A DNA stretch of 64,000 bases from Octopus sinensis. Lineage: Eukaryota. The position numbers were made by a program, and so were the translations under genes. The stretch lies in contig NC_043011.1 in NCBI RefSeq assembly GCF_006345805.1, forward strand, positions 63,190,464-63,254,463. The letters are read 5' to 3'. Below, one piece after another: positions 12,480 through 64,000 of this stretch; position 1 is the stretch's first letter; each line of letters starts with the position of its first letter. The notes beneath the pieces are model-generated. The model searched no databases and was not told where the DNA came from. It saw only the letters and a program-made list of their open reading frames with translations.

Positions 12480-12520
12480 TCAAGAGAGAATATCAAATTT
12501 ATGCCTGAGTTCACATATAG
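12480..12520 (-). CDS. Gene E terminal coding exon 4 (P-ICELRHKFDILS*)
   Basis: Acceptor TTATTTTCTTTCAG, phase 1 compatible with exon 3. The flank GGTTGTGATT resembles GGATGTGATG next to exon 4 of B. The alternative duplicate at 14217-14257 gives the same peptide. Confidence 0.55.
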
Positions 12521-14216
12521 CTGAAAGAAAATAATGTAAACTTTTCCAGTGACCACCACATCGGCCTCCTTATTCAAATTAACGTTTCACTGTATTATTC
12601 TTTTAGGCAATATAATTAAATTTAAAACGTGTGAAAATGTAAAATTCACTTCAAAATTTGGAAATAAAAAAAATATATCTAAGTTTATCTTTATTTATGA
12701 AATGTAGTGAGGGACAAAAGTTTCCAGCATGCTTGGCAGCGCAGAGGTAAGTTGGCCGGAGGGTACAGGGTGGCTGTTGAAGAAACAGAAGTTGTCGAAA
12801 GGAGGCTGTGTATCAGGAGGTGCGAGTCCAAGTGAAGAGATAATTAGATATAAGCTAGAGTAAGATCACCGAGATGAGGGAGTCTCATGATGAAGAAAAC
12901 AAATTACCTACACACCTCAACAAATACCGAATCGCTAAATCTTGCCTGCTTTGCTTATTCTTGTCGTGAGAAAGTGCCTACAATTACCTGCATGCCGGAG
13001 TGTGTACAACGGGATTAACGTAGAATGGAATTATGACCAATACAAGAGTTTGCAGCAGAATCATATGGAACTCATCTTACGAGTCTTCTCGAAAGTTTAC
13101 AACGAATCTGTTGCTTTATGTTTACATTCAAATTAAAATCATTTTCGTGATAATACGTTATCATTAATAAATGATTCACACGGTTCTTCAACGAAATGTT
13201 CATGCATTCAAAACTACTTACAAAGTAACATAGGACAATATATACTGTTAAAGTTACTTCCAGGGAAAATTTATATATTAGTTAAAAGATCAAATATACG
13301 TAATATTGTTTTCTGCATACTATGGCTAATATTTAAGGAAAACATGTATAGTGAAACCGTTTATTTCAGTTGCTTGCAGTAAGAACTCGGTGAGCTAATA
13401 ATATCGAAGAACATAATATTACGTAGCGTGACACAGCACCTTAACTGACTTCGCTATCAACCATATAATGAAGACGTTCTTGACCGCGTTGATAATCATT
13501 CGCTGAAAATACACATGGAAAAGAAGGAGAGTAAATCTGTATTAACTGTTTATAAATTTTCTCTGCTATGAAAAGTTAAAGATGAAATTTTAATTATGTA
13601 AATTAAGCTTTATATTAAGTATATCACATCGATAACATTGTTGATGATCATAAATTATTTGTGATCACAATTATTACTCAAGTATAGTATTAGTCCTAGA
13701 CAACAAATGATTATAAAGAGCGTTCTTTATCGCAGTATTTTAGCAATATCCCGTTGCATCGGTTTGATTGTTGCTTTTAAAATGAACAACTATTAATCAA
13801 ATACTGTATTATTACACAGATATTCTACCACACAATTGTTTAATGACATGCATCCGTAAGTTTACAGCAGAAACATATCAGTAGATATAAACACATACAA
13901 GGCCCTTTTAATTTTAAAACTCACGTTCACATCAATTCGTTTAGTCGGAGATGTTACAAAATATGCTGTATAAAAGGATATTACATTCGAGTTGCATGGG
14001 AAGATTGGTCCTATTTCTTTCCAAAAATAGACCGTTAATATCATGAAGAGAGATGATGGAGAAAAGAGGAAGAAAGAGAGAGTGTAGGAGAGAAATTATG
14101 ACAGGGAAGATAGTAAAAAAGGCAGAATGGAAAGTATTCGGGGATGGACAGGCGTCTAATGTTTAACGACGTTTCATGATGTGAACTTTGTAGAAATTCA
14201 CATTAAAAAAAGTATG

Positions 14217-59380: not shown

Positions 59381-62300
59381 CTTCGTTATAAAGGATTTCG
59401 GTTTTATCAGACTGGAATATAATACACTGTACTTGTCGGAGTTCGTTAACCTTATTCTTCAATATTTGAGGTGATTGTTCATTGGAACATTATTTAAAAC
59501 ATTCTTCGGTCAGTTTCGTAAGTCAATTTTAGGAAGTAGGATGGACAAAATAAAAAAAAAAGAGTGAGCATGCGGTTGTCAGTGGAAAATAATAAAAGTT
59601 CAAATTCCTATGAAAATGTATCTACACTGTATTGTCGAATCTAATATTCCGTGTCGTTCTATGTTTTGCATGAACTAATATTAAATATTAGTACAATATT
59701 CATAAATTAGGAAAATTAATTTAGAATATATTTAAAAAATACCGTCTATAATTCAATCTATTTTCTATTTATATTAAATCAAACCCCATAAATGAGCTTT
59801 GTAAGAATATTGTGTATATATATGGAAGCCACTCTGCACGAAATAAATTATACAATTACAAGGGAAAATGCCAGCAAGAGATATAATATTCTTAAGATTA
59901 TAAATCTGGAAAAGTACAGGACAAAGTATTACACTTGGAAAAGGTCAGGACAAGTTATTCTATCTGGTAAAGTACGGAACAAGAAGATTTTTACATAAAC
60001 TATTGAAGCAAAGGATCAAATTTCCAGAAATTATTAGGTCATATTAAAACTAAATCTCATGTTACAAGTTACTACTTCTAAATATTATTAATTGTAACAA
60101 CTATTAAATATAACAACTAACTCAAAATATTTTTTGCATTTAAAAAAATTCATTTTTGAAATTATTTATTATGATGGGAAATTTAAAAATGGGTTATAAA
60201 AATAATAGTAGTATATAATTAGTACAATAAATAGAAAAGTACAAAAATAGTTATATATTATAGTAAATTCTGCCAATAACAACAGATTCACAGTAAAATT
60301 TGCTTGCGTTATTGTGTAAGTTATTGCCAAGTCTTCACATTTTTAGTCTTGACCAAATACTTTTTTACATAACGAATCTGCCTACCAAATATACGATTCT
60401 ACTTTGCATAAACTTACTCTGCTATAACATTGCTACAGATTTCGATGTAAAACTTTTCAATTAGACAAAATCTGAAATTGTTTATACCAAAATGTAGCTG
60501 GGGAACAGTCCTCTTTAAAAATGTTAACAGTTTTCAATTGGATTAAGAAAAGAATTAGCGACAAAGCTCCGAATATGCTGCGTGTGAGTACATTACGGCC
60601 TTAAGGAGATTATGTAACTTCTACCGTAGTTGAATGGTAAAGGAGGGCCTACTTAAATATTTGTGTTTGAGTATCTTCCCCTCTTTTGTAAGATTTATGT
60701 TTCTTTCTTTTGCTTGCTTGGATAAGAGAATTCAAAGGGGATTTATTCAAGAATTACAGTTCCAAATAGCTACATGAGATATATTTCCTAAATAGTGGTT
60801 AAATGGTTCTAGTATTTGTCCACGGGTATATGTAAATTCTATAAGGACAACAGTTGTCAAAATCCCAATGTTATATATATAACTGATCATTTACAGAGAT
60901 GAACATCATGTTATTTACACTGGTGTCACATCTGGAAACAACAGACATAATGCAATATAAATGTTTTCTCTTCACCCATCGTCATTACTGTTAAGAAATC
61001 ATTTTAAAAATGTAGTATATGTAATTTTCTTTGGAACATTTAATTTTGGAGGGAATTTATGGTGAAGTGTAACTCCATTACTTTTCGGAATCTTGGGTGA
61101 TCTTTTGAACTTTGGTGAAAGCGAAAGATTTTCAACTATCCTTCACCGCATTTTTCTAGATGGTTTATTCTTTATTTGGTTTATCCTTTTATTTGTTTCA
61201 TTCATTTTGATTGCGGCCATGCTGGAGCACCACCTTTAGTCTCGCAAATCGACCCCAGGACTAATCTTTTGTAAGTCTAGTAGTTATTCTATCGGTTTCT
61301 CTTGCTTAACTGCAAAGTTACCGGGACGTAAACACGCAAGCATCGCTTGTCAATCGGTGTTCGGGGAGGAGCACAAACAAACACACCACACACACACACA
61401 CAAGCACACACACATACACACACACACAAACACACACCACACACACACATATCGTAGCTTAGTTTTTCCTTGGAGCTGGCCGGATCGGAGCTATCTCGAG
61501 ATTAATCAGCCGAAATTGCTAGGATGATCCGGTTCTTGACTGAAGATTGAAGGCTTCGATTGTCTCGTCCGTGTTTTTTGTATCGTCTTCTAAATGTTTT
61601 ACGTTCTTGTCCCAGTTTGTATTTTTCAACATATAAAATATATATGTATATATATATATATATATAATATATATATATATATATATATATACATATATAT
61701 ATATATATATATATATATATATATATATATATATATATATATATATATATATATATATATATATATATATATATATATATATCGACGGGCTTCATGTAGT
61801 TTCTGACTACAAATCTCCTCACAAGGCTTTATTGGCCCGAGGCTATAGCAGAAGACACTTGCCTAAGGTGCCACTTTGTAGGAGCCATGGGGTTGGTAAG
61901 CAAGCTATTTACTACATAGCCATTCCTTATATAAATTTACTACGGGATGATTGGTATGAATTTCTAGAGAATTACAAAATCACACGGGTATCCATTGAGA
62001 ACGAGCGCAATTGTACCTTCTTGAAATGTAAGGTGTTTAAATACAACCTTGTTAATATGTATATAATAAGGTATGGTAGCAGCAGCAGCAGTAGTCACTC
62101 TCTAAACGTAGGTGTTGTTACCGTTCGAAGCGATCGTGTAAAGTAACTTCCAACTATTGTTGTAGGCTACTCACCACCTATTGGATGACACGACCCTGCC
62201 GTCATTCTTTGGTGTAGACAAAATTCCATATCTATATATGTGTGTGTGTGTGTGTTTTCTTTGAGCGGGCACATTTGCCGTTTTGTAGTTATTGTCTGGG

Positions 62301-64000
62301 CGTCAAATTTCTCATTTCCGAATGCTGGTTATTGTTAACAATGTTGTTGTTGTTATTGCTATACACCCTGTTGTTACACAGCCACGGTTAGGGTTGTTTT
62401 CGATTACTGCGGTACATATTTCTCTTTTTTTTACAACAGTCCGCAACACGTTCTTTAATAATATGACGAAGATTTCGAGAAATGCAATGATATATTTATA
62501 CAGGATTTATTTTTTAAATTTATCTTCATAGTATTTACTCAATCTTGGTTCTATGTATAATGAAGTATGGTAGTACAGCAGTCACTCTCCAAAGGTAGGT
62601 ATTGTCAACGCTCCAAGCTCTCGGGTAAACTGACTTCCAAATATTATTGTGGGCTAATCACCGCCGGTTGGGTGACAAGTTATATTAACAGCAGTAGTAT
62701 AGTGAGAGATTATTACCTATGAAGTGCACGCAGCAATTATATGGAAACGGAATCATATGGAACACATCTCACACGCATACATGGAAATCAGCTTTACATG
62801 GAGGTTAAGATTAAATACCTTTTACTTATAACGAGTGATTCAGTAAGTTCTCATAATTAACAAATAGACCACATGTTTTGCCATTGCGATTTTAATAAAT
62901 TCTAAACGATTAACAAACATAAAGCGAATGTACACTTTTGAAAATACTTGGAACGAAAGTTAAAAGGACAGGAAATGTGATGTTGTTTTCGGCCGCAGAC
63001 TATCGCTGCTATTTAAAATATATTTGCGTAGCAGATTCGTCGCTCGTAGTTTCGTCGTAGTTGCTTTTCATTAAAACTCATGTATTTAGGTGGCCAACAT
63101 CCAAAGAACAGGAACAATACACAGCCTGGCAAAACGCAGTATTCTATTTTCCCATCGGTCTTGACATAGCGATTATATAATTGGCTTCGATGCTATATAG
63201 TGTTTAAGAAACCGAACTGAAAAAAGAATGCATTAAACACAGATTGAGACATAATTGTACATGAGCAAAGATGAAATTCTAATTGCAATGAATTAAGACA
63301 TATATCTATACGTAGGTATTGTTGAGAACCATGAATTAATCGTTACAAAGATAACTTGCAAGAAATTAGTCTAAATAATTTCTCAGTCAAGTATAGAAAT
63401 CAATTGACAGTAACCTATCTTAGTATTTTGTGATGATCCATGATATCGCTGTTTTTTGTTACCTTCAAAATGATCGAATATTAATCGAATCCTGTATTAT
63501 TACACATACATTACATTATAAAATTATTCGATCATATCAATATGTCTGTATAGTTTTATAGTTGAGCTATAACTGCAGATATTAAATACTAGTCATTTTC
63601 CATTAAACGACCGCGTCCAAATTGGCTTATTCATGGACAAAATGCAGAAATAACGATATATTGCGTCTGTACATCATGGGAAAGTAGATGCTTTTTTTTT
63701 CTGAAAATACAGCGTTATATATATATAGCTTGGATGGGATTATTGAGGCATTTAATTTACCTTATTGAAGTCACGGGTCATGTTTGTATTCTTCTAAGTT
63801 TCGTGCTGAAAAGTATTATTTAATATATTTTGTGAATGACTTTTACGTATGCAGGATATCTATATAGCATATAATCTACCTATCTATCTATCTATCTATC
63901 TATCTATCTATCTATCTATCTATCTATCTATCTATCTATCTATCTATATGTCTATCTATCTAATTATTATCTGTTTGTTTATCTATCTATCTAATCTATC
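59381..64000 (+). repeat. Segmental duplication, copy 2 (runs off the window edge)
   Basis: Colinear with 26261-31000; differs by substitutions, many 1-nt indels and a few larger indels. Confidence 0.95.
63771..63805 (-). CDS. Gene C exon 4 coding part (P-RNLEEYKHDP*), identical to gene A; upstream exons lie beyond the window
   Basis: Exon 63761-63805 matches 30646-30690 base for base, with the same splice sites. Confidence 0.75.

Follow-up and report, generated by a model that had tools for sequence, protein, structure and literature searches.

Candidate soluble members of an Octopus-restricted, RGM_N-like family of six-cysteine proteins in a tandem gene cluster of Octopus sinensis

The Ly6/uPAR superfamily, which includes the SLURPs and the snake three-finger toxins, comprises glycosylphosphatidylinositol (GPI)-anchored, multidomain, and soluble paralogs encoded in tandem clusters, the soluble proteins acting as diffusible ligands. 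Ten cysteines (Cys) are found in the GDNF/GAS1 domain, a Cys-rich, all-helical extracellular domain whose GPI-anchored carriers bind cystine-knot growth factors. In repulsive guidance molecule (RGM) proteins, the N-terminal domain is a bundle of three helices and three disulfides that binds BMP2 and GDF5 at the epitope of the type-1 receptor (PMC7354924), and soluble RGM fragments down-regulate BMP2 and GDF5 signals (PMC7354924; PMC8063088). Conotoxin superfamilies and the mussel MgCRP-I family (PMC4558851) consist of short, knotted, gland-expressed peptides that are known or suspected to act as toxins or in immunity. Here, we analyze a window of 64,000 nucleotides (nt) from the 2.72-Gb genome of Octopus sinensis (chromosome-scale contig C15, positions 63190464-63254463), which contains two intact genes, A and B, and one doubtful copy, E, encoding small proteins with an identical six-Cys frame. 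Our preferred interpretation, held at slightly better than even confidence, is that A and B are both live and belong to the soluble branch of a superfamily that is restricted to Octopus and resembles RGM_N. Their most likely role would be that of diffusible binding modules, E being of doubtful status.

Comparison with these systems places the family nearest to the RGM N-domain (RGM_N; structures 4UHZ, 4UI0, 4BQ6, and 6Z3H). Both are extracellular domains of about 60 to 70 residues, by prediction in the case of the octopus proteins, with three α-helices and six Cys residues distributed two per helix. They have an identical C-x8-C-x7-C core, share the motif D-x-x-[FY]-C-[KR]-x-L-[RK], and occur in proteins that are often GPI anchored or, in the octopus, often GPI-like. 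The Cys spacing of octopus and human RGM is C-x4-C-x22-C-x8-C-x7-C-x21-C, whereas the C1-C2, C2-C3, and C5-C6 intervals of the family are of 7, 16, and 11 residues, so that its third helix should be shorter than that of RGM. The likeness to Ly6/uPAR proteins is an analogy only: the family displays a small disulfide-locked extracellular domain, the same spread of anchored, multidomain, and soluble forms, and tandem clusters, but the three-finger fold is all-β, the predicted fold of the octopus domain is all-α, and there is no sequence relationship. With conotoxins and MgCRP-I, the family shares a conserved signal peptide, an invariant six-Cys frame, a hypervariable mature peptide, and lineage-restricted expansion, although here the mature peptide is a domain of ~60 residues, predicted to be helical, with GPI-like and multidomain relatives. 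GDNF/GAS1 resembles the family in being an all-helical, Cys-rich extracellular domain carried by GPI-anchored proteins.

Genes A and B were each reconstructed as four coding exons with intron phases 1, 2, and 1, all six splice sites of each gene conforming to GT..AG (Table 1). Gene A encodes an 89-residue precursor and a mature protein of about 72 residues (8.6 kDa; net charge, −7). Gene B encodes a 94-residue precursor and a mature protein of about 77 residues with a net charge of +4.7 and a single NFT sequon; its first intron spans 9.3 kb and harbors a long interspersed nuclear element (LINE). The charge of mature E is +4.0, and the masses of the mature proteins range from 8.6 to 9 kDa. In both A and B, exon 4 starts after the acceptor CAG with C[AG]CGAAC/ACC and is homologous to the annotated fourth exon of O. 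bimaculoides LOC128249836. A scan for signal-peptide exons was swamped by open reading frames (ORFs) in microsatellites and had to be narrowed by region and by conservation among paralogs. Judged from the DNA, A and B are predicted to be working four-exon genes, the window otherwise containing one doubtful copy and pseudogene debris.

These models bear on an earlier, sequence-only reading of the window, which had proposed three minus-strand genes. All of the peptide segments that it had put forward were located on the minus strand where it had placed them. The exon sizes (49, 97 to 103, 89, and 45 nt) and phases were recovered in A and B with GT-AG junctions throughout, and the frame C-x7-C-x16-C-x8-C-x7-C-x11-C is exact in A, B, and E. 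The notion of multiexon genes in which the signal peptide has an exon of its own and the six Cys residues keep a fixed frame is supported. The count of three genes stood in part, since A and B splice canonically but E, as written, lacks a canonical donor for its first intron. The ORF track indeed conceals these genes, because their exons are short, their introns hold LINE ORFs, and microsatellites abound.

On the minus strand, at window positions 30620 to 30660 in A and 44170 to 44200 in B, the stop codons are immediately followed by AATAAG and then GTAAAT, with ATTAAA next in A and AATAAA in B. This sequence may represent either an additional donor leading to an exon of the 3′ untranslated region (UTR) or a polyadenylation signal that would leave a very short 3′ UTR.

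Table 1. Positions of the family genes, relics, regulatory motifs, and mobile elements (window coordinates unless a flank or another chromosome is indicated)
Feature	Position	Strand	Remarks
Gene A	30646..38725	−	Intact; 4 coding exons; GT-AG junctions throughout
Gene A exon 1	38677-38725	−	Signal peptide; 49 nt
Gene A exon 2	34353-34449	−	97 nt; Cys1-3
Gene A exon 3	33648-33736	−	89 nt; Cys4-6
Gene A exon 4	30646-30690	−	Tail; 45 nt; stop at 30656-30658
Gene B	44194..55405	−	Intact; 4 coding exons; GT-AG junctions throughout
Gene B exon 1	55357-55405	−	Signal peptide; 49 nt
Gene B exon 2	45991-46093	−	103 nt
Gene B exon 3	45331-45419	−	89 nt
Gene B exon 4	44194-44238	−	45 nt; stop at 44195-44197
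Gene E	14217..24771	−	Reading frame and Cys frame intact; doubtful copy
Gene E exons	24723-24771, 16189-16291, 15589-15677, 14217-14257	−	
E-box of A	38795..38804	−	CATCTGTTAC; 70 nt upstream of ATG
E-box of B	55475..55484	−	Same as that of A; 70 nt upstream of ATG
E-box of E	24841..24850	−	CATCTGTGGC; 70 nt upstream of ATG
P1-P7	−83602 to −6361	+	Seven tandem copies; 7- to 24-kb spacing
Duplicate of E exon 4 with acceptor	12471..12541	−	71 bp; 97% identical; coding part 12480-12520
A′ pseudogene, 3′ part	59381..64000	−	Continues to ~72721; duplicate of 26261-39603
A′ exon 4	63771-63805	−	Only A′ exon inside the window
Relic exon-2-like fragment	5775..5855	−	LLCQKSAKKCKEGNEAFPS... then GTAAGT; decayed family member, shortened, without Cys3
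Relic promoter	Flank 80345-80415	−	Exon 1 mostly deleted
Relic exon 1	Flank 134150-134290	−	Relic near 134186; in-frame TAG (MKFIL*ICLLIIG)
LINE-type endonuclease/reverse transcriptase ORFs	17402-21082	−	Intron 1 of E
LINE-type endonuclease/reverse transcriptase ORFs	47900-51005	−	Intron 1 of B
Reverse transcriptase fragment	2866-3660	+	96% identical copy at flank 77223-78020
Mariner-type transposase fragment	6644-7447	−	Downstream of E
N-domain of the true octopus RGM gene	C2:164242613-164242819		Vertebrate Cys spacing; one exon, then GDPH autocleavage motif

Inspection of 264 kb around the window revealed at least 14 family copies, namely, P1 to P7 on the plus strand and E, A, B, A′, F, G, and H on the minus strand. 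Near window positions 0 to 12 kb, these arrays meet tail to tail. In the P copies the first three exons are of 46, 100, and 89 nt; the fourth could not be fixed in the O. sinensis sequence. Every one of the 14 local copies has an exon 3 of exactly 89 nt, and the six Cys residues are invariant in these copies and in 37 domains from databases. In addition, gene A matches the locus of an annotated O. bimaculoides gene exon by exon (E = 1e-9 and 2e-8). The constant length of exon 3, the invariant Cys residues, and the exon-wise match to O. bimaculoides indicate that this is a gene family and not a product of chance. Genome-wide protein searches detected further exon matches on C15 between 63.03 and 64.91 Mb, on unplaced scaffolds, and, in small numbers, on C6 between 28.65 and 28.74 Mb. 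The related exon matches on C15 amount to roughly 40 loci over ~1.9 Mb, which is a lower bound. The trio of tandem genes perceived in the sequence-only reading was thus correctly attributed to tandem duplication but belongs to a far larger array.

The genes of this array have diverged extensively. A and B are old duplicates, with overall identities of about 40% for the proteins and 60% for the DNA. Their best conserved parts are exon 1 and the promoter (76 to 78% identity), whereas the conservation of exons 2 and 3 (58 to 60%) does not exceed that of the introns beside them (60 to 72%). In the P1 to P7 array, the ratio of nonsynonymous to synonymous substitution rates (dN/dS) is about 0.9 to 1.4, and every Cys residue is kept. 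This pattern points to a conserved signal peptide and a fast-diverging mature part. The family grows by tandem and segmental duplication, surface residues diverging around a fixed Cys scaffold and copies dying often.

Relatives of A, B, and E were difficult to retrieve from protein databases. Gene A alone yielded no relatives in a word-indexed protein collection, and a word-based search with alignments recovered just two and four relatives. We built a family profile from two database proteins and the exact translations of the exons and ran it against 1.84 billion representative sequences. This search returned 27 proteins at E ≤ 0.001. Sources were looked up for 26 of them by one count, all being Octopus proteins, and for 21 by another, 20 of which belong to the species O. 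bimaculoides, O. vulgaris, or O. sinensis; the designations are "uncharacterized" or "hypothetical." One entry, P0022 (ENA; 277 residues; E = 1.3e-5), is repetitive and does not resemble an octopus protein (WKHCQSVRNW...SPTCVKSV repeats); it is probably a spurious match to Cys periodicity. The profile search, one of the checks put forward in the sequence-only reading, thus led to relatives that, where looked up, are all from Octopus apart from P0022. No homolog from outside Octopus was found among the 1.84 billion representatives, in agreement with the proposal that the family is lineage specific.

No protein with at least 50% identity to A, B, or E was present among the 15 billion proteins searched. 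A, B, and E, together with any close orthologs, are therefore absent from that collection, which fits their description as unannotated. The idea that the family itself is unknown holds for these three genes but not for their relatives, among them the ortholog of copy G, since three Octopus species have such proteins in their annotation under the name "uncharacterized protein," XP_029645997 being an annotated relative in O. sinensis. In the papers found, neither the family, nor its accessions, nor an octopus RGM-like expansion is described, and no identifier of a family member occurs in the searchable literature.

The relatives differ in architecture. Single-domain proteins are of ~80 to 125 residues, and others contain 2, 3, 4, and 9 tandem domains. 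Many end in a hydrophobic tail compatible with a GPI signal (e.g., P0008, P0010, P0017, P0020, P0023, P0005, and P0007). The tails of A, B, and E are short and hydrophilic, and A, B, E, and G have no membrane anchor. XP_052830341 (LOC128249836) of O. bimaculoides, which is orthologous to local copy G, follows the same plan of four coding exons and ends in a tail resembling those of A and B (...CDPQNIGVYDDHSIRRH); the gene order H-G-F is kept in that species. O. bimaculoides LOC128249859 is of the P subtype, with two extra C-terminal coding exons and a basic RSKRIKRK stretch, and the 373-residue O. vulgaris model CAI9735829 wrongly fuses several P copies. The sole relative with a name is A0A0L8GPX5 (P0015; O. 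bimaculoides; two domains), designated "GDNF/GAS1 domain-containing protein" in UniProt.

The fold was modeled with AlphaFold2. The G ortholog gave a confident core, and the 62-residue domain alone, modeled with a 37-sequence alignment, had a predicted local distance difference test (pLDDT) score of 93.7 and a predicted template modeling (pTM) score of 0.79. The model contains helices at residues 2 to 19 (kinked), 26 to 40, and 45 to 58, with the Cys residues distributed 2-2-2 across them. The family domain is predicted to be a three-helix bundle with three disulfides, as described for RGM_N (PMC7354924).

RGM_N was also the match that recurred in profile searches of Pfam and of PDB sequences. 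Nineteen of the 37 single domains matched Pfam RGM_N (PF06535) at E ≤ 1, with a best E value of 2.2e-4, and no other family among the 24,736 scanned was matched by more than one of the 37 domains. Two relatives passed the curated cutoff of 24.2 bits, P0005 (37.9 bits summed over four domains) and P0014 (29.1 bits; two domains). In the reverse direction, the family profile was compared with 177,635 PDB sequences, and the only matches under E = 1 were the N-domains of RGMB and RGMC (E = 0.016 to 0.02). This alignment spans Cys3 to Cys5 (D-x-x-[FY]C-K-x-L-R-x-Y-x-x-C-x7-C). The sequence-only reading had not recognized the Cys spacing as that of any named family; the domain does have a named closest relative, RGM_N, if only by a weak link.

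If A and B are translated as predicted, a signal peptide would precede a single domain of ~60 residues, composed of three α-helices held by three disulfides, and the product would be a soluble protein of 8.6 to 9 kDa. A and B would form the tail-less, diffusible branch of an Octopus-only superfamily in which other members are of the GPI type or contain up to nine domains. Such proteins would be binding modules, neither enzymes nor membrane-lytic peptides, and may serve in the extracellular space as diffusible ligands or decoys for a receptor or growth factor. By analogy with RGM_N, the partner could be of the bone morphogenetic protein/transforming growth factor β (BMP/TGF-β) type.

Several results weigh against this interpretation, in particular against the link to RGM. 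Gene A scored 16.2 bits with RGM_N, below the curated cutoff, and B and E did not match. The [KR]-R-L motif after Cys3, which drives the match, is lost in A, B, and E, which also differ from RGM proteins in lacking a GPI anchor. Three of the five Cys spacings are unlike those of RGM. The family domain is always split by a phase 2 intron after Cys3, whereas the N-domain of the true octopus RGM gene is encoded by a single exon. That N-domain scored only 12.4 bits with the hidden Markov model (HMM) of the family, and its comparison with the family profile by hhalign was insignificant (probability, 1.2%). Foldseek searches of the PDB with the full-length and domain models returned only generic helical matches, none of them below E = 1, and no RGM structure was present among the top 50 for either model, small helical bundles being a weak case for Foldseek. 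The structural check suggested in the sequence-only reading was in this respect divided, with a confident three-helix model but no PDB match. Unlike in RGM, the family domain is the sole unit of its proteins, present singly or in as many as nine repeats, and an RGM_C/vWD part or GDPH site was found neither in A, B, and E nor in the 27 relatives. The proposed BMP-type partner is pure analogy and should be taken as a lead. Finally, dN/dS values near 1 are also expected under relaxed constraint, and, for A, B, and E, both transcription and the splice junctions remain predictions from DNA.

These discrepancies leave substantial room, if somewhat short of an even chance, for the alternative that the family arose within Octopus as an orphan, or has its kin elsewhere than in RGM, and that its likeness to RGM_N is coincidental and uninformative about function. 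The similarity is limited to ~25 residues around Cys3 to Cys5, the Foldseek and hhalign comparisons gave no support, intron position, three of five Cys spacings, and domain context differ, homologs are confined to Octopus in the representatives searched, and the name given to P0015 indicates that automatic methods disagree. However, RGM_N was the sole match to recur in both directions of search, two relatives exceeded the Pfam cutoff, and the combination of three helices, three disulfides, and frequent GPI linkage is that of RGM. As for the competing name, the Pfam GDNF/GAS1 family (PF02351) did not match P0015 or any other tested member at E ≤ 10. We consider true homology to RGM_N to have about an even chance; the likeness is weak and does not establish membership. 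The alternative concerns ancestry and is compatible with a function as binding modules.

Kazal, Kunitz, EGF, ShK, saposin, CHH, big defensin, Ly6, and insect odorant-binding protein domains were also considered and rejected; none was detected in the Pfam scans, and their known Cys spacings do not fit.

Small, helical, disulfide-rich proteins serve as water-borne pheromones in other animals, as exemplified by Aplysia attractin and the Euplotes pheromones. The sequence-only reading had proposed a family of secreted effectors on the ground of features typical of venom, antimicrobial, and pheromone genes, and we regard it as unlikely that the proteins are venom components, antimicrobial peptides, or water-borne pheromones secreted by glands and diversified by an arms race or mate recognition. 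The conserved, separate signal-peptide exon, the invariant Cys residues, the hypervariable mature region, and the tandem birth-and-death arrays would be expected of such effectors, as would the missing membrane anchor of A, B, E, and G. Nevertheless, no toxin, antimicrobial-peptide, or pheromone family was matched in Pfam or the PDB, and the proteins have no shared cationic character, the charge of the mature forms extending from −7 to +4.7. Much of the wider family is GPI-like or multidomain, which suggests a role at the cell surface rather than in gland biology. None of this is evidence of a venom, antimicrobial, or pheromone role.

The promoters provide a further feature common to the family. 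Each of the 14 local genes, three in the window and 11 in the flanks, carries the 10-nt sequence CATCTGT[TG][AG]C, which contains an E-box, 69 to 96 nt upstream of its ATG. In the 264 kb, 17 sites were observed (1.4 expected); of the three not accounted for by these genes, two mark relic first exons. Even where substitutions have saturated the DNA around a pair of genes, the E-box is kept. CATCTG serves as a binding site for NeuroD1/E47 and for heterodimers of TWIST1 with the CAG-preferring partners HAND2 and TCF3, and the Neurogenin, Oligo, and Mist subfamilies likewise favor the CAT half-site (PMC8431614). Common control of the genes by a dimer of a class A basic helix-loop-helix (bHLH) factor and an E protein, acting through this E-box, is probable. 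The motif is compatible with expression in neuronal, neuroendocrine, or professional secretory cells and would not decide among them.

A broader and quite unlikely proposal would combine the RGM_N-like domains, the ~1.9-Mb megacluster of at least 40 loci, and the NeuroD/Neurogenin-type E-box into a private octopus system of extracellular signaling or recognition, in which the members would be GPI anchored, multidomain, or soluble and the soluble ones, such as A and B, would modulate BMP/TGF-β-type ligands or neuronal surface receptors. Were this proposal true, the family would stand beside the protocadherin and zinc-finger expansions in octopus-specific neural or sensory biology. If expressed, the family would in any case rank among the larger lineage-restricted families of secreted and surface proteins in Octopus. 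Should the link to RGM be real, dozens of "uncharacterized" octopus proteins would gain a concrete hypothesis that can be tested, and it would be the first case of an RGM_N domain used alone or in tandem repeats. The locus also illustrates problems of annotation, since genes with short exons, such as A and B, were missed, tandem copies were merged (CAI9735829), and pseudogenes lie amid live copies.

It is very unlikely that the window copies are unexpressed or decaying pseudogenes whose frames remain open only through youth: E has no usable donor, A′ and several relic exons are dead, the sister array has dN/dS values near 1, and A, B, and E are absent from the protein collections searched, but A and B have kept, despite their old divergence, 12 of 12 splice sites, their frames, six Cys residues, hydrophobic signal peptides, and the E-box, features that neutral decay would have destroyed, as it did in A′ at only 2 to 8% divergence.

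The status of gene E depends on the end of its first exon, which reads ...ATTGCG followed by GTCTCGA. An exon of 49 nt ending in phase 1 would require the intron to begin with TC, immediately after the G. The sole GT is located one base earlier, in phase 0, and its use would cause a frameshift. No other phase 1 signal-peptide exon was detected for E between positions 16300 and 30600. Thus, in the absence of a phase 1 GT donor, E as written needs a noncanonical splice or a one-base assembly error, or else it was recently disabled. The tail of E also contains a seventh Cys residue.

A′ arose as a segmental duplicate of ~13 kb that covers the entire A locus with 92 to 98% identity. Beyond the window, its exon 1 has a 1-nt deletion and its exon 2 a deletion of 188 bp, and these losses make it a pseudogene. 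Additional debris includes a decayed exon 2 in the window and two relics of first exons or their promoters in the flank, in addition to fragments of mobile elements (Table 1). The 71-bp duplication at 12471 to 12541 corresponds to positions 14207 to 14277 and takes in no more than the last exon's acceptor and coding part in E, with a few bases besides.

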